The position numbers and the translations under genes were made by a program. From Corallochytrium limacisporum Hawaii (lineage: Eukaryota; Protista; Pluriformea), in the NCBI GenBank assembly GCA_002811645.1, contig PDIP01000022.1, forward strand, positions 289,509 to 353,508: 64,000 bases of DNA, written 5' to 3'. The first letter of the stretch is position 1. Each line of letters begins with the position of its first letter. This document shows, piece by piece, positions 20,067 through 32,611 of this stretch. The notes below the pieces were generated by a model that saw only the letters and a program-made list of their open reading frames with translations, was not told the origin of the DNA and made no database searches.

Positions 20067-21584
20067 TTACACTTGGTCCTGGCGGGCCTTGTCTTCGCGC
20101 TCCTTGAAGGACAGCTCCATGTCGTTGGGAAGTCCGAAGGTGGCACCCATGGTGATGAGACCGAAGACAGTCATCATAATCCAGGGCACCCAGCGTGCAG
20201 CCGGGAAGTCAGCGAACTGAGTGCTAGACCAAATGATACCAGCCAAAGCAGGGCCAGCAGCGCGTGCACCGGAGGCAAAGGTCTGGCCAATACCGTTGGC
20301 ATATCCTAGATCCTCAGGGGCCACAGCGTTGTTGGACAGAATGATGATACCCGTGAAAGCAGTCAAGTTGAACACACCACGCATGCACATGATAGCAAGC
20401 ATGTATACCCAAGTGAGCCAAGTCTTGTCGTACTCAGCAATGTCATGCATAGATGGGTACAACCAGAAGAGAGCAATCGAGGCGAGCATACCCCAACGGG
20501 CAGCCAACAGGTTGGAGTAAAGCTTAGACTGGCGAGGGAACACGAAGAAAGCGTAGAAGCTCACGAATGCACCCATAGCGGACAGAGCCAATCCGATCTG
20601 GTCAGAGTTGAATCCCAGACCATTGTGTGCCAACTCAGTCTTGGCGAACAGGGGGTAGGTCTCATCAAGCATGATGTAGGTGAAGCACATGAGACCGTAG
20701 CTGGCAAGACCCCACCACATGGGAGCCTTGGAGTACTCGCGCTTCTGGACAGGGCCAGCACCGTCTGCCTTCTTTTCAACCTTCTCCTGCATAACCCAGT
20801 AAATGATGGGCAGGTTCAGCGCCAGCATGCAAGCAGAGACCAGAGAGGGGGCCAGGTAAGGGAAGCGATCGAAGAGAGAACCCGGAGGGAACGCATTGGG
20901 GTACTTTTCGGCGGGGTTGGACAAGAAACCACCAAGGGCGGGAGCCAGGATAGTACCAATGTTCCAGGCAACAGACAGAGCACCGAAGGCAGCCTTAGAG
21001 TTGGTGGAATCCGTGTTCTTGGCGAGGTAAGCCTTCATGGCACCCAGGTTACCGTTCATCAAACCGGTGGCGAAACGAGCAGCCAGTGCAACACTGTAGA
21101 CAGGTGCGGTACCTACAACCAGATGCAGACACATAGCGCTAGTGACAGCGGTCATAGAGACAACCTTGGATCCGTAGCGGTCAGCAACACGACCCCAAAC
21201 AAAGGACAGCAGGAACTGACCAAGAGGGAAGGCAGCGGTCAACAGACCAGCGTAGGTACCGACCTGCTCTTTGGAAATACCCGGGAAAGATTCCACCATG
21301 AAAGGAGCATAGGGGAACAAAATGGAGATCTGGAACGCCTCGCACAACTGCAGCAGAGAGACAACAATGATGGGGCGCCAGGGGAAGGGAGTTTCCTTAG
21401 GGCGCTCGCCCAGCAGAGGGACGTCTTCAGCCTCTTCGGGGATGCGCTCTGCGCCGAGACCGCCGTGGTGTTGCGCACCCTCAAGAGTGCGGCGGGAGCT
21501 CTCTAGGAAGTCCCGGGCGACGGACACGTCGGAGGTGGAGGCATTGTTGAGCTCAAGAGCCCGAGATTCGGGAAGGGAAGTCAT
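20067..21584 (-). CDS. MFS transporter, ZIFL/YCR023C-like (DHA1)
   Basis: 12-TM pattern, motif A WGRVADRYGSK, ARFATGLMNGN, GPA/APALGGFLSNPA, GYANGIGQT..RAAGPA. Confidence 0.93.
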   Translation of the reverse strand: MTSLPESRALELNNASTSDVSVARDFLESSRRTLEGAQHHGGLGAERIPEEAEDVPLLGERPKETPFPWRPIIVVSLLQLCEAFQISILFPYAPFMVESFPGISKEQVGTYAGLLTAAFPLGQFLLSFVWGRVADRYGSKVVSMTAVTSAMCLHLVVGTAPVYSVALAARFATGLMNGNLGAMKAYLAKNTDSTNSKAAFGALSVAWNIGTILAPALGGFLSNPAEKYPNAFPPGSLFDRFPYLAPSLVSACMLALNLPIIYWVMQEKVEKKADGAGPVQKREYSKAPMWWGLASYGLMCFTYIMLDETYPLFAKTELAHNGLGFNSDQIGLALSAMGAFVSFYAFFVFPRQSKLYSNLLAARWGMLASIALFWLYPSMHDIAEYDKTWLTWVYMLAIMCMRGVFNLTAFTGIIILSNNAVAPEDLGYANGIGQTFASGARAAGPALAGIIWSSTQFADFPAARWVPWIMMTVFGLITMGATFGLPNDMELSFKEREDKARQDQV

Positions 21585-24312
21585 TGTTGCTTATGTGTTG
21601 ATTACGCAACTTCACGAACTATTTGTACAACCTTTAACAAGACTAACATACAACATTTACATGAATCCCATGACTGTCCCCTTGAATACCTCGCATCTCA
21701 CTGAACTGCGTTCTTGTGAAACACTTGCGACTGTAGCGTGGAGCAAAGCGAGAACCACCCGAGAGAAAAAGAACGAGGACAGTCAATGTCTTATCTGTTT
21801 CCGATTTCTTTCTGCCGTCGACTTTTTCCCTCAGTGCCCTGAGTGGGGGCGTAAAAGCGGCGGGTGTGTAAGTGTTTACACTGCGTCCTTGGACCCACGG
21901 TGGCTAAATGCCTGTGTTTGTCTTTCTGTCAACGCGACCATTTTTTTCAATTTCTTTTCTTTTTCTCTGTCTGTTTGGGAGTGAGAGGTCCTCTCCATGC
22001 TCCATCACGTTCATCTCCTCCCTCGGCCCTGTTGGGCATTTACTGGGTGGTAGCTCCACCACGCACCGGGGTGCTGGTGCTGAGGGGACGGGATCGCAGG
22101 AGCAGTGCGTGTGTGGAAGAAAAAGCTTGGTGCAGTGGTGCGGTATTTGCATTGATGGAGAGTGTGGGTCGCGATTTCGTAGGCAGACTGTGTGAGAGCG
22201 AAGGGCGAGGGGCAGGGGCGGTGGAGGGTGAGACCCACTTTCGCGTACCGCCAAAAGCTTTTACACACAAACACGCAATCGTAGGGTTAGCGAAAAGGGA
22301 AGAGCAAAGAGAGGGGGGGGGGGATAGAGAAGGAGGGCTTTTGCGGGAGGAGCGCAGCAAACAAAAAAAGAAAAAAAAAACAAAGAAAAGAAAGGAAACC
22401 AAACAGACCCCAGGGATATTTGTCCCCCCTCCCCCCCCTCTTGCTCCACGGTGTGACGAGAACACTTTTGCCCAAAGGGAAAACACAGGGACCACCAACG
22501 GGAACCAAGGGAGGGGAGAATAGGAGCGGGTCTCCAAAACACTTTCGCTTTGCCCCGTTAGTGCCGATAGTTTGGCGCGAGATCTAGCTGCTGTCGCGTG
22601 GGCCACAGAAAAAGGGGAGGGGTCAGGGGCAGGCCATGTTTTGATACGGACGGACGGATTCGTCCAGCTCGGAAGGAGTGGCGAAATTAGGGGTACCAAA
22701 TTGTAAGCGAAGCGATATTCCCTTACTGACTGTACTAGAGAAACAAATGGCGGGTCTCACGGGAAACAGAGAGCAAAAGGGGGGGAGCTGAGACAGCCAG
22801 AGGCTGTCCACCAACCTTTCGGCAGCAAGGCGAGTTTTTGCCGCACACCGTACGCCTCGTTAGTTTTTTGATTATCGGCGCAGGTCTCCACGGGTCGGTA
22901 CTTACTGCACTGGGTGATACTCGCCGCGGGTGAACACGAAGGAAGGAAAAACTAAGGACGGCGAAAAAAAAAACTCTCAGCTGGCTGAAGGACACGAATC
23001 ATCCATGCTCCTATATACTCCCACCACAGCCAGCCCTTGGACCCAGCATAAGGTGCCGCACACGAACACTTGCGTCTGAACAGGTGAACACACACACGCA
23101 GCAAGGCAAAGATCGTAAAACATTTACCCAGTGCTCTCCCCTCCTCCCGACTCCCCCCCCCCTTGGCTGTTGACATTACGGTGTGGTGGGAGACTGAAAC
23201 CGACGGGCGAAAAAAAAAAATAGGTGCAGTCAGATTTGCCCACAGAGCTGGCATGATGTGATTTGGGACATCACAACCGTTTGGGGCCAGCGGGAGGAGA
23301 GTCTAGCACCCCGGAGCTTGTAATTGTTTTGTGGATCGGCCCGTGCCAGTGGTGCTACACAATTGTGTTTGTATCTTACCTATGTAAGTGCGCGTCGTCA
23401 CAAGGCAGGAAAGAGTCCCATTCCCATCGGGGTCCTCATCTGTACAAACATCCAACCACATCTAAGCGATACTTTGTCGTGCTGCCATGAATGGAAGGTG
23501 GCTGTCGATGATCAACCATTTAGGCACTTTCAAAGACGGACAAGATCTGGATTCGAGCTGTGTACGGACTTATACACAAGGTACACCAATTCAACTGAAT
23601 GACTGCATACCTTCACCCAGCCATCTGCTTCCTTTCGATCGATGGCTGTCAGGGTCCGAGTCTACTTCGCTGCAATAGTTTCTCGCATATTCGCGCCACT
23701 GGCGTGGAGACGGGCATGGAATATGCGTCATGGATTCTCCAAATATGCAAAAGTATGCGCACAGCCCTGTACCCGAACGACAAATGCACGGTCAACTGGC
23801 AGGCAGACATGAAAACCTGACGCACAAGTCCGAATGGAGGCGCATGTTTCAGACATCTACTCGAGCACAATCGGACACGACACTCCCTGGTAAGAATCTG
23901 CATGTGAATGATGTCCGTCAGTCCCCGTGTCTTTTGTTCTGCACCGAATATGCAAAGGGCGAACCGCAGGCCCCAATTAATGTTAGCAATGACTAACGCC
24001 AGGCATCCGGAGGGCTGCCCCCTTCGAGTATCTAATATAGCCCACAAGAACCTACCTACCTTTCGTCACCACCGCTGTCTGCCGAGTTTTCGATCGAAGC
24101 AAAAATTACAATTTTCCCATGGGGAATCAAGCCCTTTACAATACCGTGGTACAAATGATAGTATATTACATATTGAACTTCGCATTATTTCACGAAACGG
24201 GCCTATCAGACCATCGTCATCGACGAAGATGAGGCTCGTGAGAACGCGGATCAATTTGACACTTTTTGAGTCTAACAGAGATAACGGACAGTCCAGAGGG
24301 AGGGGGAGGGGG

Positions 24313-24487
24313 NNNNNNNNNNNNNNNNNNNNNNNNNNNNNNNNNNNNNNNNNNNNNNNNNNNNNNNNNNNNNNNNNNNNNNNNNNNNNNNNNNNNNNNN
24401 NNNNNNNNNNNNNNNNNNNNNNNNNNNNNNNNNNNNNNNNNNNNNNNNNNNNNNNNNNNNNNNNNNNNNNNNNNNNNNNNNNNNNNN
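24313..24487. other. Assembly gap (N run) flanked by G homopolymers
   Basis: Ns in the sequence. Confidence 0.99.
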
Positions 24488-25511
24488 GGGGGGGGGGGGG
24501 GCTGCCATAACAAGAGAACGTGCACCCTGGGGCAACACGATTAAAATTGGAAGAGGACCGAGGATACGGAGGGCAAAGCTGAGTAGAATTTTCGACACAT
24601 CGTCAATTTCAACGGAAAACTGAGGGGCCACCGCAACAGCACAGTCGCACGCAGCAGAGAAAATACTATACGTTCTCTTCTTCTCCCCCTCCCTCCCTGC
24701 CCCCCTTCCATCCCCCCTTCCCCCACCATCAAACGCACCGGGCAGACCGGAGGAGCCATGCGATTGAAGGGAAGGCTTTCGTGCTGGTTGGAGAGGATAG
24801 CTGTAGAGGATCCGCGTGTGTGACTGTGCGCACTGGGCGTGCTCCGACATCATTAACAAAGCCGACACACTCGTACAACACACTGCGACAAAATTGATGG
24901 GGAAAGAATAGAGTTATTCAGCTGCGCGGTGGGTTTGAGGTATGCTCTTTGATGGGCGACATCCAAGTGCAATGACACTGCTTACCTACTTACCCGACCC
25001 TTTGGAGCGGAGAGACAGTTGTAGATTGCGAGCATGCCTTCATACGAAGTAAGAGTCATCATCTCAGGAACACCAGAAGCGAGACTTGAAAATTGCAAAG
25101 CACGATCATCAACAATTGCGGACAAACCTTTTCAATTTGCAAAGACGATGGCGATGTTTTAGATGGAGTAAAGACGGCGCAGCCACCAACCCTTGAACCA
25201 CACAGGGAGCGGGTATATATGCCAGTCACAAACAAGATTTGTCCTGTTCAACATATACTATTTGCGAGGGACAGGCTTGTCTTACAGGTGGTGCCTCATA
25301 TCCTGCTCTCTGAGGCCCAAGTCCCTAACCGGCGTATGCTTTCAGGCAGTGTACATATCTCCGATACCATCAAAGTTGTCCTGAGGATTTTCTCCGCGAT
25401 TCTTTTGGTATGCAGTTGTGGTAGATTTGGCGACTATAAACAAATAACATGTGGGTCTTCGGACTCAAAGTGGTAACTGTGGTAGCGAATCAAGATGCTT
25501 CATGATGGCCG

Positions 25512-26787
25512 ATGAATAAGGATGTGGAGATCCAATCATGGGCGGTAAGTGCTCTCTTTTCAGGTACTGTGGTCACAGTAAACAACAAAGATATGCGATT
25601 CAGTTAAGCGCCCGAATTCGCGTCGAGCGACAGCCTTGAAGGACGCGCTGAGTTGTAACACCGGGCCACCAGATTCTTACCACGCTCTTTGTGATGGGAG
25701 CAACCACTCTAGTCAACTGTGGAGTCCGAGAGCAACGCAATCACCAGAGAAGACTTAGGCTCTGGCAGTCAGAGTCTCTTAAGGTGTACCAAATGCCGCA
25801 GTCTGATTACCACTCATGCAATAGAACGCATACGAACGAGACACACGGTGGTACCTTGTACACAGGAGTAGGCTCGTCAAAGTCGGAACGCGGGAACCAT
25901 TATGTAGATTGGATGCCGAATGACCGTCACTTGCTCCGCTCCTAAATCATTGACAATGACAACAGCTACGAATTCGGCCAGCTGTGGCCTCCATACACAC
26001 CATGTCGGCACACACTTGAGCCTGTGAGTGTTGGTTTCGTTTTCCCTTTTGGATGGGATTTGTTCACGCACTTCCAGCTTGATCGGTACAGGTACGAATT
26101 CTTGGTTGTAGTGGCTATGAGCGTTGGCCTTGGACGTGCACAGAGTGAGACGAACAAAACAAAACTGCTTTGGCGGGCCCTAAGGGCTGACCCAATTGGC
26201 GCAGCCATCCCCAGCAACACCCATCTCGGGCTGACGACAGAGTCGTGGAGAGCTGAACTACACTGAACGAAGAACCCATCGGCTGGTGGGGGAAAATAAT
26301 AGCTGATGTCCTATTTATCCCTATTGCATCCCACACCAAGGGCAACACTGAATATACTCATCCTAGGCATCAGTGAAAATTTTGCCACAGAGCGGAACGG
26401 CAAGGAAACTGGATGGTACGTCAGAGTTAGGTACGGGGCGACGGACACACGGAGATTGGCTCGCCCCGCACCGGCCAGGTACACTCAGCGACGGAGCTGC
26501 GCATTGGCGAGGAGTCGCCGTTTGAAATCGTTCCGTCCGACGGTCTTCTTCACGGCGACTGGACCCTTCCATCGGGCGCGGCCAGCTCTCGCGCCACCAT
26601 CGCCACGAGTCTGGCGGACTTCCGACCCCAGTTTGACGATGGCCATGTGACGGACTACGTCGATATTGTAGGGCTGGGCATGTCTGTGCCCTTTCGGCTT
26701 TCTGGTCGGGGAACTTACGATGAGAAGCACAGAGGCCATTCCGATGCTTTAAAAATAAAAGATCATGAGCAAGTTTATAAGACGTGA
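25512..26787 (+). pseudogene. Degenerate DLEC1/CFAP81-like (ASH/Hydin Ig-like domain) flagellar central-apparatus gene remnant
   Basis: Stop-free frame 26431-26787 reads ..SPFEIVPSDGLLHGDW..ADFRPQF..VGLGMSVPFRLSGRGTYDEKH.., resembling the DLEC1 C-terminus as recalled (FRVSPNSGLL..VFF..LRLRGQGSYDERY). Upstream frames carry further ASH-like pieces (YEFGQLWPPYTPCRHTL..FPFGW; IIADVLFIP) interrupted by stops (25943, 26264, 26374, 26428) and frame changes. The 5' boundary is approximate. Confidence 0.55.
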
Positions 26788-26965
26788 GCAATGGACCTAG
26801 TGACACTGATAGACCAATACGGTGGTGTTTCGTAAGACAATTTACAATTCTATATCAAAACATGTGAGATGCTCAAATCACAGGGTAATACACACGAGGC
26901 TTTGTGATTTGCGTGGGGCAAACAGAAACAAAGAAATCGTTGGACCTGCAACGCGTTCAGAAAGT

Positions 26966-29900
26966 TTACAATGTGATTGGTTCACCGTCGGGACCGTCAA
27001 TGGTTGCACCGGCGGCAAGAGCAATGAACAGCGCACCGACCGCGACACCTAGGACCACAACAAGCACACCGACGGCACGCAGGCGTGCCAGCACACCTGT
27101 ATCAACCGGCTTGGTGGGTCCTATGGCAAACAAGAAGTGCGTGTACACCAAGAGACTTACTACCATGCTCACCGCAATGGACAGCATAACAATGTTGCCG
27201 ACTTGCTGGATGATCACGAGCTCGGCTGCCACTAAGGTAGCTAGCGAAACGACGGTGGTAATGGCACTGCCAATAATGGAGGAACCGATGTGACCAAGTG
27301 TGGACTGCATCAGTTGCACACGACCCTCATGGTCACTCCATGGCACACCCCCGACCGTGTTGAGCGCGTCAATGTACGCCACAGATATGTGAATCAGGTA
27401 GTCCACACTCAGACCCAGCAACAGGGACATGGCCACCGCCTCGACAACGCCCAGTTCCCAACCAGCGAGGTACAGAATGCCCATGACCAAGGGAATATTG
27501 GCGCACATGCAGATGCCGGCCAAGACTGCAATGTGGAGAGAAGCTGTGAAAAGATACAGTGAGCTAGCGCTGATAATCCAGGCCAGTGCAAGAGCCCATC
27601 CGAGGCCAGCGACGGCGCCGTGTTCCGTGGCTGCGTCGATCCAATCTTCAGTTAAAGCTGATGCGAGGGAGTCCTCTGGCAGGGTGTTCTCGCGCAGCGT
27701 CTCAGTCCAAATCTTGTAGGTATCGTAAATCTCCGATGAGGGGTCAGCACTGCTCTGCTGGGTGAAGTAAGTGTTGCGAACCCAAACGATGCGGGCATCA
27801 TCTAGCGCATCCTGGCGTGTCTGCTGGTCCAGGGAACCCACCTCATCGGGCTCATCGGCGGTGTCTGGGTCGTCTCCAGGGGCGTTCAGGATTGCGCCCA
27901 CGTTGGCCCCCGGCAGCCAACCGACAGATACACGGTACTCGGTCACTTCGTTGGTAAAGTCGAAGACCATGCGGTTCACTTGTTGACGAGTGTAGGTGCT
28001 AGGATCGAGGGGCAAGCTCAAGTTTTGTGTTTCTTGGAGCCAAGTCTGGAATGCACCCATCATGCAGCGGGTAGCATCGGTGCGGTTCTGGACCAGTCCT
28101 TCGTAAGAGCTTGGGTCGTCACAGGCGTCGACCAGCTGCTGCTGCGTCTCGGCGCTGTAGAAGTCAAAGTTTTCGTTCAATTCTGGTGTGTAGCTATTGC
28201 GGTTGATCTGCCCACGATCGACTAGTAGGACTGAGCCCTCTACGCCCCACATGAGGTCGACAATTATGTTGTCCAGATTTAGACGGGCCGCTTCAGTGCA
28301 GGCCTCTGTGTCACTGGGGTCTCGACAGAGCCCGCACTCGTTGAAGCGCAGCGGAGAACCTGCCACGCTGTCACAGCCAACGCATGTGCTATCGTCATTG
28401 GAATCTGCGCACGCAGTTACTGTTACTGGTGCCGAAGCGCTGAACATCGAATCGGCCTCCCCATTGCACGCTATCGTGCTCAGTTCGGATTTGGCGCCGA
28501 GACATGTCTCCAAAGAACGGTTATAGAGCACAAAGACCCGCAAGGTACCCTCCACGACTTCGGTGGGATCTACACCGCTTGCAAAAGTGGGATATGGCAC
28601 CACAAGGCCGGACCCAAAGGTGGCTTGACCATTGATCACAGCAGCGACATCGTTCGGATTCGATGTGATTGACGCTAAGGGACCCAGGCAAACTGCGACG
28701 CCGGCACAACCCTGCACCTCAGTGTCAATGTTGCCAGAGGCTGCATCACGGAACTCTAACTGTATGGGCTCCGCGCTGGGAAGGGTGTAGACGAAACTGA
28801 TGGTCTGAGGAACCACTTCGACTGTGCCGTCGAAATCAGGTATCAGATCGCTGGGGTCAATCCCTGTCTCCGACGGGTCAGCGGGGGTCGTCGGAGTATT
28901 TGGTTCCTCAGTGGTCGTTGGGCCCGCAGGGTCAGTCGGATTCTCTGGGTCAGTCGGATTCTCTGGGTCAGGAATGCCAATTACAGGATCATCTCCGGCA
29001 TCACAGGTGGATCCATCACCACCGCAGACACCACAAGCATCGCGGGTACGTCCGCTGCCAGGAATGCCGTCGCATCCGACCGGTTCTACCTCATCGACCG
29101 AGCAGTCTCTGCAGGCCTCGTTAGGGGAGCCGTATACACTGACAAAAGTAATCGCACGCTGATAGTTAGTGTCTTCCTCAAGGAACTGGGGCAGCTCGTC
29201 GGAGGTCGGGAAGATGGCGCTAAGATATATGGCAATGGCAACAAAGATCGCAAAGATGACGCTTACAGCAATGCTGCACTTCTTGCTGCGAAAGTAGAAG
29301 GGGACAAACTTATTGGCGAAAAAGCGATCCAGATGGTTGCTGCCACGTTCACCACCAGCCACAGTGCTGTCGTGTGGAGGAGATGCACCCATCTTCTTCG
29401 CTCCTTTGCCAGACTTGCGGCCATTGTAGCCTCCTATTGTTGGCGTCGATGAGCGGAGAAGAGTAAAGACTTGCGAGTCCTGCCGGCTTTTCGGGTTCTC
29501 AAAGGCCGAATCTACGCCAGTCGGGGTCACAGAAGCGGCGGATTCCCGTACAGCGAAGATGCCAACGTCGGACGCACGTCCTATCTCAGGCAGCTCACTG
29601 ATTTCGGATTGGCGACTGTCGCTGCTACTGGTATCCGACTTTTTGCTGCTGCTGCTTCCGCAACCGCTGCAATTTGACGTCATCTTATTCCACAAGCGCT
29701 GTGCAAACAGTTCCTGCAGCACAATTACTGCAGGCCACATGGTAATAACCATCACGAAGGTAACCATAACCTGTGTCGCCACAAAGATGCCAAACTGTTG
29801 CACGGCCGGAACTGGTGAGGCAGCGTTCACTACCATGGCTGCAGCAGTGGTGAAAGACGTTACCAGTACTGCCCAACCACTGCGGCGCAAAGTGCCTCCT

Positions 29901-31366
29901 AAGCGGTAGGCCAAGCGGGCCTTTCGCTCGGAGCCGAAGAGTTTCTTCTCCTTGGCGGGATTCTTGACGATAATCAGTTCCTCCGCGGTCTGGTTGAAAG
30001 TGAAAGCCATGACCAAGAGATCATCCACAGCAATACCCAAAGTGATAAACAAACCCAGGACATTGATGCCGATGAAATCAGAAAAACCGAAGACACCAAC
30101 AAAGAAGAACATGGTTACAGGAATGGAAATCAGGATAATGGCCACACCTGTTACGGCCAGGAAGAGCGACCGCAGAGCAACAATTAAGATAATACCAACA
30201 ATACCTGCTGCCACAAGAGAAAGATATGCGTCGTGGATAATGGCCGATTCGAGGTCATCTTCCGTGAACGTCTGGTCGTACCAGAAGGAAATAAAGTCAT
30301 CGTTCTCTGCCATTTCTCGCAACATGGGTGACAGAGTATCGTCAACGAACGCACGTGCCATGCTGCGCTGCGTTTCACGCCGGTCCAGGCAGTCGGTAAA
30401 GCCCTGGAACGGACAACCGATTTGGAGGGCACTGATGAGGTAGTTAGTGGCCGGTTCGGCCGGGCTGGCAGTGGCATTGACGATTTGCAGAACCTCAGGG
30501 ACGGTCGACAGGCTAGTGAACTGGCGAGTGACATCGTTCACAATGTTGCCATCGTAGCTGTAGGCACCACTGGTATCTGTGTAGAAGAAGGGAACCAGAC
30601 TAGTAAGTTCCTGGCATGCATTGTTGCCACCGCGTGGCCGACGACATACAGCTTGATAGCCCTCAGAGTCTATGATTGCTGTTTCGGCATCGCGCAACGT
30701 ATTCAGCAGCTCCGGCTCAATAATCGTACGGTTCCGGTCTCGCATCTCGTAAATGATCTGGAGCGTGAAGAACCGGTCCAACATTGTGTCATTCACAGGC
30801 GAGCCGTCGAACTGTCTCCGCTGAACCCCTATTGATTCATCGTTGTAGAGACTTCTCATAATTGTCCAGTTACCACCTGCGGTCTGGTCCACGGCCTGCA
30901 GGGTCTCGTAGTTATTATATGCTGTGGTATCCGTGGCTCGGAATTGCTCCTCATCTACGTCAATGTTGAAAGTGAACATGGTCAGCAACATCGCAATCAA
31001 GCCGCCCGCGATGCCCAAGCATATGAGCAAGTGTGTGAGCGGATACCGAACAACCCAGTCGGTAAACATATTCCGCTTGTTTAGTTTCTTTCCACACTGT
31101 GCCTCTGTCACACTGGGAGAAGAACTACGTCCATTCTCTATGTTGTCAGCCGACTCTGTAATGCTGGATCTTGTGCTCCCGTCCTCGACCAGCGGTGAGG
31201 ATGACATACGAAGATCTTCAGGTACTGAAGCGTACATCCGAGTATTGCTACGTCTTGGCTCCGCTACAGACGACGACATGTACCCATAGGCGTGCGCACT
31301 ACTCCCTCCGATGCTCTCCTGACGGAAAGTCCGGTCATTCTGGATGTCACTTTGGTGGTAAGCCAT
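26966..31366 (-). CDS. Dispatched-like (Patched/RND sterol-sensing domain) 12-TM protein
   Basis: 1+5+1+5 TM layout with two large luminal loops. RND motifs GIAVDD (TM4) and GLSVDY (TM10), TSFTTAAA, SAITT. First ATG at 31366. Confidence 0.92.
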   Translation of the reverse strand: MAYHQSDIQNDRTFRQESIGGSSAHAYGYMSSSVAEPRRSNTRMYASVPEDLRMSSSPLVEDGSTRSSITESADNIENGRSSSPSVTEAQCGKKLNKRNMFTDWVVRYPLTHLLICLGIAGGLIAMLLTMFTFNIDVDEEQFRATDTTAYNNYETLQAVDQTAGGNWTIMRSLYNDESIGVQRRQFDGSPVNDTMLDRFFTLQIIYEMRDRNRTIIEPELLNTLRDAETAIIDSEGYQAVCRRPRGGNNACQELTSLVPFFYTDTSGAYSYDGNIVNDVTRQFTSLSTVPEVLQIVNATASPAEPATNYLISALQIGCPFQGFTDCLDRRETQRSMARAFVDDTLSPMLREMAENDDFISFWYDQTFTEDDLESAIIHDAYLSLVAAGIVGIILIVALRSLFLAVTGVAIILISIPVTMFFFVGVFGFSDFIGINVLGLFITLGIAVDDLLVMAFTFNQTAEELIIVKNPAKEKKLFGSERKARLAYRLGGTLRRSGWAVLVTSFTTAAAMVVNAASPVPAVQQFGIFVATQVMVTFVMVITMWPAVIVLQELFAQRLWNKMTSNCSGCGSSSSKKSDTSSSDSRQSEISELPEIGRASDVGIFAVRESAASVTPTGVDSAFENPKSRQDSQVFTLLRSSTPTIGGYNGRKSGKGAKKMGASPPHDSTVAGGERGSNHLDRFFANKFVPFYFRSKKCSIAVSVIFAIFVAIAIYLSAIFPTSDELPQFLEEDTNYQRAITFVSVYGSPNEACRDCSVDEVEPVGCDGIPGSGRTRDACGVCGGDGSTCDAGDDPVIGIPDPENPTDPENPTDPAGPTTTEEPNTPTTPADPSETGIDPSDLIPDFDGTVEVVPQTISFVYTLPSAEPIQLEFRDAASGNIDTEVQGCAGVAVCLGPLASITSNPNDVAAVINGQATFGSGLVVPYPTFASGVDPTEVVEGTLRVFVLYNRSLETCLGAKSELSTIACNGEADSMFSASAPVTVTACADSNDDSTCVGCDSVAGSPLRFNECGLCRDPSDTEACTEAARLNLDNIIVDLMWGVEGSVLLVDRGQINRNSYTPELNENFDFYSAETQQQLVDACDDPSSYEGLVQNRTDATRCMMGAFQTWLQETQNLSLPLDPSTYTRQQVNRMVFDFTNEVTEYRVSVGWLPGANVGAILNAPGDDPDTADEPDEVGSLDQQTRQDALDDARIVWVRNTYFTQQSSADPSSEIYDTYKIWTETLRENTLPEDSLASALTEDWIDAATEHGAVAGLGWALALAWIISASSLYLFTASLHIAVLAGICMCANIPLVMGILYLAGWELGVVEAVAMSLLLGLSVDYLIHISVAYIDALNTVGGVPWSDHEGRVQLMQSTLGHIGSSIIGSAITTVVSLATLVAAELVIIQQVGNIVMLSIAVSMVVSLLVYTHFLFAIGPTKPVDTGVLARLRAVGVLVVVLGVAVGALFIALAAGATIDGPDGEPITL
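28930..28970 (-). repeat. 18-bp coding tandem repeat (DPENPT x2) in a Pro/Thr linker
   Basis: gggtcagtcggattctct occurs twice on the + strand, followed by gggtca. Confidence 0.85.
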
Positions 31367-32611
31367 ACTAGCAGTGTCCCACCGGTAGATCAAATTCTTA
31401 TGCAACGGGACGCTACACGAAGATTGGGACACGAGCCAAACGTTTAAAACCGGTATGTACGTGTGTTGCCCCAAAAGTTTCTAAGTCCTATACTGATTCT
31501 ATACTGCTAGACATTGGCGTACAATTCGACCAACTTGCCCGCAAATGGCCTGTGGAATAGATCAGGAAAGTAGGGCTTCGAAGGTCGTGATCACTGGTCT
31601 CCTGAATACCAGCCCGAGTGATCGAATCTGGACTGTTACCCTCATGACAGCTATATGATATAACCCAAATTCCGTTCGTAGTTTTGCGTTCATGTTTCTT
31701 TCGAAACCAAAGGACTCGTTGCTATCGCACCGTACAAGGACGTTCGACCTCTTTGTATTTGGGAAGCACAATGCGATCCAAAAGGGAACCCAACCAACTC
31801 TCTCCTGCCCAATAGCCACAAGCGCAAAACGGGAGCACCGGTGCTTCCCCACCCCAACCAACCGTTTCGTTCAGTCTCTGTTCCACTGCCTGAGTTCTTT
31901 GCATTGAATTTATATGGATTTGCCAACATACGTTTCGCGCAGGTCTCGTTGGCAGGAGTACCCGGGTGCCTCAGCACAGCGCGATCGCAAGCCCAAAGCC
32001 CCCCCCCCTGCGCTTCTTTCCTCGGGCGCACGGAAGACTCGGCGAGTCCACAAAAAAAAAGGGCTGAGCGAGAGAGGGGGTATTCCTTCAGCGTATCTTG
32101 TTGACGTAGAAACTATTCTTGCCATATTAAATGTACGTAATAATGATATGAGTTTGTGTCCTGCAGGTCTCTGAACCTCGGTTTCCATTGGCTTTTGGCT
32201 CGCTGCTTGCTGCTCGGGAAAATTAAAGTCTGCTCTCGGACACCAGTGATCCAGCGCACGACACAAATTAAGAGTAGAGGGTTCGTCATCCAAAAATTGC
32301 CCTCCGGAGGAATCCTTCCACATGCCACAGAGTTCCATAGTGAAACATAGGGCTTGCGTTTCGCTCTGGTGTCAAAAATGCACCCACCGGCCATCCGAGA
32401 GCGGGGGGGGGAAGGGGTTCTGATCGAAAAGGGATAAAAAGCGGAGAACGAGAGAGAGGGCCGAGGGGGGGGGGAAGAACGCTTTGTCTCGGAGCCCAAG
32501 GGAGTCTCTCTCCCTCTCTGTGTGTGTGTGTCTCTCTCTCTTTGTCTCTCTGTGTCTCTCTCTCTTGCGCGCGCTCGCAGTACAGATACTACCACGACCA
32601 TGCCCCCCCCC

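Follow-up and report, generated by a model that had tools for sequence, protein, structure and literature searches.

A probable 3' remnant of the central-apparatus gene DLEC1/CFAP81 in Corallochytrium limacisporum

Introduction

Loss of an organelle or a trait leaves unitary pseudogenes behind. DLEC1/CFAP81/FAP81 is the ten-ASH-domain base of the C1e projection in the central apparatus of the flagellum (PMC12297659, PMC7999657). Corallochytrium limacisporum is a transfectable unicellular relative of animals, for which a cryptic flagellated stage has been claimed from the detection of flagellar genes (Torruella et al. 2015, as cited in PMC7147346 and PMC12731214), and this stage is still cited. 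The published genome of this organism, 24.1 Mb in size, has an intron density of about 0.0 per kb of coding sequence and encodes long-branched proteins (PMC5560861), and centrioles are present in TEM (PMC11153136). Our literature searches turned up no account of pseudogenised flagellar genes in C. limacisporum.

In this study, we analysed positions 25512-26787 of a 64,000-nucleotide stretch of the C. limacisporum genome, hereafter the window. From the letters alone, a sequence-only reading had described these positions as an internally deleted DLEC1 of about 1.3 kb and a record of ongoing flagellum loss. Like DLEC1, the locus has the sequence pattern of the last ASH domain, including the terminal G-x-G-[ST]-Y-D-E motif with a stop soon after. 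Unlike DLEC1, which has about 1,700 codons (median of 144 orthologs), its open frame has 118 codons and no start codon, lacks Ig_Dlec1_1 and Ig_DLEC1_6th, and has about 16 residues fewer in the first half of the domain, and no transcript was seen. The closest counterparts in the same genome are broken p28/DNALI1 and IFT57 genes. The locus resembles them in being a single-copy sequence with a gene-like codon signal, apparently from a flagellum-specific family, between intact intronless genes. However, p28 and IFT57 are nearly full-length with one to three frameshifts and strong profile matches, whereas the DLEC1-like sequence is a weakly scoring terminal piece.

Results

The locus is part of a 5.4-kb interval poor in ORFs, flanked by an MFS gene (20067-21584, minus strand) and a convergent, expressed Patched/Dispatched-like gene (26819-31474, minus strand; ORF 26966-31474; Pfam PF02460, E=8e-11). 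The RNA contigs of the latter end at 26819 and 26866, 32-79 nt past the stop codon of the frame under study. This assembly comprises 286 contigs with 24,109,830 bases in total, and its genes take the form of long single ORFs. The published assembly is 83% BUSCO-complete, a figure that is relevant here if the two are the same. An assembly error as the cause of the broken appearance was rejected, the neighbours being intact and one RNA contig agreeing with the assembly at every position of a 2,135-nt stretch. The two 2015 runs that contain the region differ by about 0.5%, which fits two nearly identical strains (10.1101/2020.11.12.379420). Polymorphism of this kind is also seen in the Patched-like gene, where the second run lacks 18 nt of a repeat-rich linker at 28929 and shows 10 single-base differences in 2.2 kb.

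An assembly gap of 175 N is located at 24313-24487. Before it lies a second ORF-poor complex block (23230-24312), in which a frame at 23679-23993 (plus strand) has a slightly positive coding score and no Pfam or DLEC1 match. Directly after the gap, poly-G and C-rich tracts at 24488-24770 resemble those upstream of the MFS gene, and an ATG near 24760 has a typical start context yet opens only a 21-codon frame. These tracts and the ATG are possibly a former promoter and start.

On the plus strand, frame 1 is open for 118 codons at 26431-26787, between a preceding stop at 26428 and the stop codon at 26785-26787. This tail frame has no start codon of its own, its sole Met being residue 85, and it is clearly coding-derived. 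Its coding log-likelihood is 25.8 bits, as compared to 28.6 ± 12.8 bits for 118-codon pieces of the intact genes in the window, and by coding score it ranks 5th among 308 open intergenic frames, in the company of frames resembling small real genes. Per codon, the signal amounts to 0.20 bits, as compared to 0.25 for the broken p28, 0.29 for IFT57, and -0.15 to 0.0 for the upstream block. It climbs only over about 26490-26735, which is the part aligned to DLEC1, and a GC change point at ~26434, from 49% to 63%, coincides with the start of the frame. The stretch is single-copy in the genome, and neither an Rfam match nor a notable repeat was found in it. The ATG-less, coding-like frame pointed out by the sequence-only reading is real, with a coding score on par with that of intact genes.

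For comparison with DLEC1, a degenerate pattern describing its first Ig domain was run over metagenome contigs and picked up 68 loci including full-length ORFs, and two homolog searches added more than 130 further orthologs, mostly labelled DLEC1 by their sources. The metagenome ORFs contain PF23277 and PF23316, and one of them, searched against the PDB, matched mouse DLEC1 (E=4e-236) and FAP81 (E=5e-61). In the PDB, the family is represented by mouse DLEC1 (9ijj_O) and Chlamydomonas FAP81 (7n6g_4C). With a full-length DLEC1 profile, 26431-26784 was the top hit among 2,243 six-frame pieces of the window, aligned at the last domain (E 0.025-0.038). With a C-terminal profile, the tail frame came first among 9,018 six-frame pieces from 264 kb of this genome (hmmsearch, 18.1 bits, E=0.001), the runner-up scoring 7.0 bits. 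Extrapolated to the 24-Mb genome, E becomes more than 10 for the full-length profile and about 0.1 for the C-terminal profile, so that descent is unproven by score alone. Comparison by hhalign gave a probability of 93.5% (P=2.3e-7), and frameshift-aware alignment at the tail gave 32.9 bits as compared to a shuffled maximum of 25.9. Two profiles made independently, one from animal and one from non-animal orthologs, scored the tail frame at 13.5 and 14.1 bits, the most divergent true orthologs scoring 12-16.

In the hmmsearch, hhalign and frameshift-aware alignments, the core of the frame (26509-26733, plus strand) corresponds to the second half of DLEC1's last (10th) ASH domain, running from F-x-V-x-P-x-x-G-x-L to the terminal G-x-G-[ST]-Y-D-E, with 17-27% identity to DLEC1 orthologs over 70 aligned residues. 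The terminal motif is located at 26686 and the stop follows 20 residues past it, as compared to up to about 17 residues past a slightly longer motif match in orthologs. A D-F-G-T-C-x-V-G block at 26437-26487 (plus strand) was placed by MAFFT on the first strands of the same domain (ungapped test, p=0.06), about 16 residues nearer the core than in DLEC1 orthologs, an assignment that is no more than suggestive. As the sequence-only reading had it, the tail frame thus resembles DLEC1/FAP81 in its C-terminal ASH domain, terminal motif near the stop included, with moderate significance. The match is not decisive by itself, but weight also comes from the terminal position, the distance from motif to stop, the first-strand match and the coding signal, and it is quite likely that the tail frame descends from DLEC1.

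The frame could instead be a remnant of some other ASH/Ig-domain gene, or an unrelated small gene, whose terminal motif is coincidental. The genome-scaled E of at least 0.1 leaves room for this reading, and the last-domain profile also matches HYDIN, CFAP65, CFAP74, and CFAP47. Searched directly, the 118-codon frame brought up no DLEC1 in Pfam, in the PDB by phmmer, or by word search, and phmmer against 1.84 billion representatives returned four matches, none of them DLEC1 and all sums of weak ones in repeat proteins. Recognition by the ESM Atlas was low (0.84), and the tail frame was not ranked by tblastn with 144 DLEC1 orthologs. AlphaFold, which the sequence-only reading had proposed as a check, failed when given the single sequence (pLDDT 40), and Foldseek on that model was empty. 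Guided by an alignment, it did produce a low-confidence Ig-like sandwich (pLDDT 59) with 9ijj_P as the top Foldseek match (E=0.018; VIA Z=5.0), a result that is circular because the alignment is itself DLEC1. Against another origin, both ends of the domain and the position of the stop fit the terminus of DLEC1, and in the PDB search with the last-domain profile, position 122 of 125 was reached only in DLEC1 and FAP81, the other families ending at or before 113. The coding-derived nature of the frame also speaks against this reading. An origin outside DLEC1 seems unlikely.

The upstream block (25512-26430) had been read as holding N-terminal ASH domains. The letters on which this was based do exist: a frame-2 stretch at 25652-26263 (plus strand), interrupted by one stop at 25943, carries the quoted motifs at 25706, 25856, 25967, and 26042. 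However, it shows no significant coding signal (p=0.12 for 25650-26270; p=0.6-0.7 for the remainder of the block), and over the upstream block DLEC1 likeness does not exceed that of shuffled DNA (p=0.44-0.97). Sliding domain profiles, frameshift-aware alignment and hhalign gave no significant DLEC1 match upstream of 26430, and none of 23 stop-free upstream pieces, taken from both strands, matched Pfam. As a positive control, the N-terminal part of a DLEC1 from outside the training set scored 262 bits undamaged and still 111-140 bits with 10% substitutions and 1% indels introduced, as compared to 14 bits for the upstream block, and the simulated signal vanished only at 20-30% substitutions with 2-3% indels. 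The N-terminal Ig_Dlec1_1 domain (PF23277) and its surrounding conserved blocks, which were detectable in the positive control, were not found at the locus, and neither was Ig_DLEC1_6th (PF23316) or an array of about 10 tandem ASH domains. DLEC1-like motifs picked by eye at 25060, 25426, and 26135-26440 were rejected, as none beats shuffled nulls. With no profile test beating its null, the recognisable N-terminal ASH domains of the sequence-only reading are not supported, and hence neither is the 1.3-kb internally deleted gene. Either the DLEC1 body upstream is missing, or it has eroded far more than the tail, deletion being the simpler reading.

The same idea would survive if one internally deleted DLEC1 pseudogene extended from ~24760 or ~25500 to 26787, with an upstream part too eroded for the present profiles. 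In the narrowest test of the proposed motif order, 25949-26068 aligns where predicted (profile 554-593), at p=0.10-0.12; a loose alignment puts the motif at 25060 onto the conserved F-L-R-N-P-R block; by coding score, the two pieces of frame 2 come 13th and 17th among the 308 intergenic frames; and Corallochytrium proteins are long-branched (PMC5560861). Yet none of these tests is significant, and the upstream DNA aligns equally well to alternative parts of DLEC1. Moreover, this reading requires a 5' part far more decayed than the tail, p28 or IFT57, given the level of damage at which the simulated signal disappears. We regard it as improbable.

Could the last ASH domain survive as a small protein with a role at the centriole? 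At 26413 there is an in-frame ATG, and directly after it a 15-nt GT...AG stretch (26413-26430 in all, plus strand) that holds an in-frame stop and whose removal takes out exactly that stop, and the IFT57 frameshift also has a frame-restoring 13-nt GT...AG. The gene-like coding score, the presence of centrioles and the Ig-like sandwich of the circular model would agree with a retained domain, made by way of a micro-intron or readthrough or as the 3'-most exon of a spliced gene. Against it, the context of the ATG is atypical, with T at -3 shared by 2 of 53 genes, G at -2 by 4, and G at -1 by 5, and a 15-nt intron would be about as short as spliceosomal introns are known to get. The near-zero intron density of the genome is also unfavourable, and none of the three p28 frameshifts comes with additional sequence that splicing could remove. 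No RNA contig of the two runs falls within 24500-26818, though the neighbour is covered at depths of 370 and 102; as these are filtered contigs, the absence is no proof. An open run of 118 codons is expected in the absence of selection with a probability of about 0.4, at the four lesions per about 555 codons of p28 and IFT57 together. A micro-intron or readthrough after the 26413 ATG is thus unlikely, and the suggestion that the last domain is still maintained is not supported; a surviving small protein of any kind is very unlikely. An intron-rich functional gene was rejected, as the neighbours are single long ORFs and the filtered contigs of the two runs contain no RNA joint of the sort that a spliced mRNA restoring a long ORF, the outcome named by the sequence-only reading as speaking against a fossil, would leave. 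Least of all do we expect a 119-124-residue protein, expressed by micro-intron or readthrough and co-opted, for example at the centriole, with similar 13-15-nt GT...AG stretches rescuing other seemingly broken flagellar genes such as IFT57.

Elsewhere in the genome, flagellar genes are being lost, in agreement with the wider decay that the sequence-only reading had proposed. p28/DNALI1 (contig C231:108020-108448, minus strand, and downstream) is highly conserved, with a Pfam match of 226 bits, yet its last 60 codons contain three small frameshifts. IFT57 (contig C143:188800-189850, minus strand; profile 159+72 bits) is intact except for one frameshift in an acidic linker, at the 13-nt GT...AG stretch. 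In a search with two dynein domains, only one dynein heavy chain was found, as an intact frame of 4,907 codons. The look at central-pair genes that had been suggested was taken for HYDIN, and neither a Hydin_ADK domain nor HYDIN was found, nor was a second copy of DLEC1; these genome-wide searches used a prefilter that also missed the tail frame, so that their negatives are limited in sensitivity and their counts are lower bounds. Five tubulins, all intact, resemble alpha, beta, gamma, delta, and epsilon by their N-termini, consistent with the centrioles seen in TEM. An intact 3,111-codon ORF (contig C25:153781-163114, plus strand) contains several divergent ASH domains (Cep192_D4, E=1e-16; DLEC1 profile, E=5e-24) and has no sequence match in the PDB; it is a candidate for a divergent CEP192/SPD-2 or CFAP47 kept with the centriole.

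Discussion

We consider it probable, if by no means certain, that the tail frame is a dead, untranslated 3' stub of a single DLEC1/CFAP81 gene that has lost its 5' ~93%. In this scenario, DLEC1/CFAP81 would have become dispensable once the motile flagellum was no longer needed, and one or more large deletions would have removed about 93% of a ~5.1-kb coding sequence. The stop codon and the greater part of the last ASH domain would have been left, next to the 3' end of the expressed convergent gene, and, having no start codon, the stub would make no protein. We infer deletion as the mechanism, a junction near 26380-26450, and the lack of function of the stub; that nearness to the 3' end of the neighbour protected it is speculative. 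The locus holds no full-length, expressed ORF of ~1,700 codons with a start codon. With no start codon, about 93% of the coding sequence missing and no other copy or DLEC1 body found by searches of limited sensitivity, the stub is most likely the remnant of a unitary pseudogene.

The proposal of a cryptic flagellated stage agrees with our results in that homologs of flagellar genes are indeed detectable in the genome. In contrast, the homologs tested here prove broken or missing, a state that favours loss over a hidden stage. C. limacisporum seems to have lost its flagellum, and the stub is probably the last surviving 7% of its DLEC1.

A stub of 350 bp is minor alone and is one of the weaker single pieces of evidence for this loss; its value is that of one point in a wider picture. 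If the flagellar genes of C. limacisporum are fossils in different states, some with one or several frameshifts, some reduced to stubs and some without trace, the genome would offer a snapshot of flagellum loss. Retention of delta- and epsilon-type tubulins and of centrioles despite that loss would then allow cilium-only genes to be separated from centriole genes, and would caution against scoring the presence or absence of genes by homology match. The locus studied here contributes a central-pair gene to this picture, and it suggests that loss of large genes proceeds by deletion rather than by slow decay.
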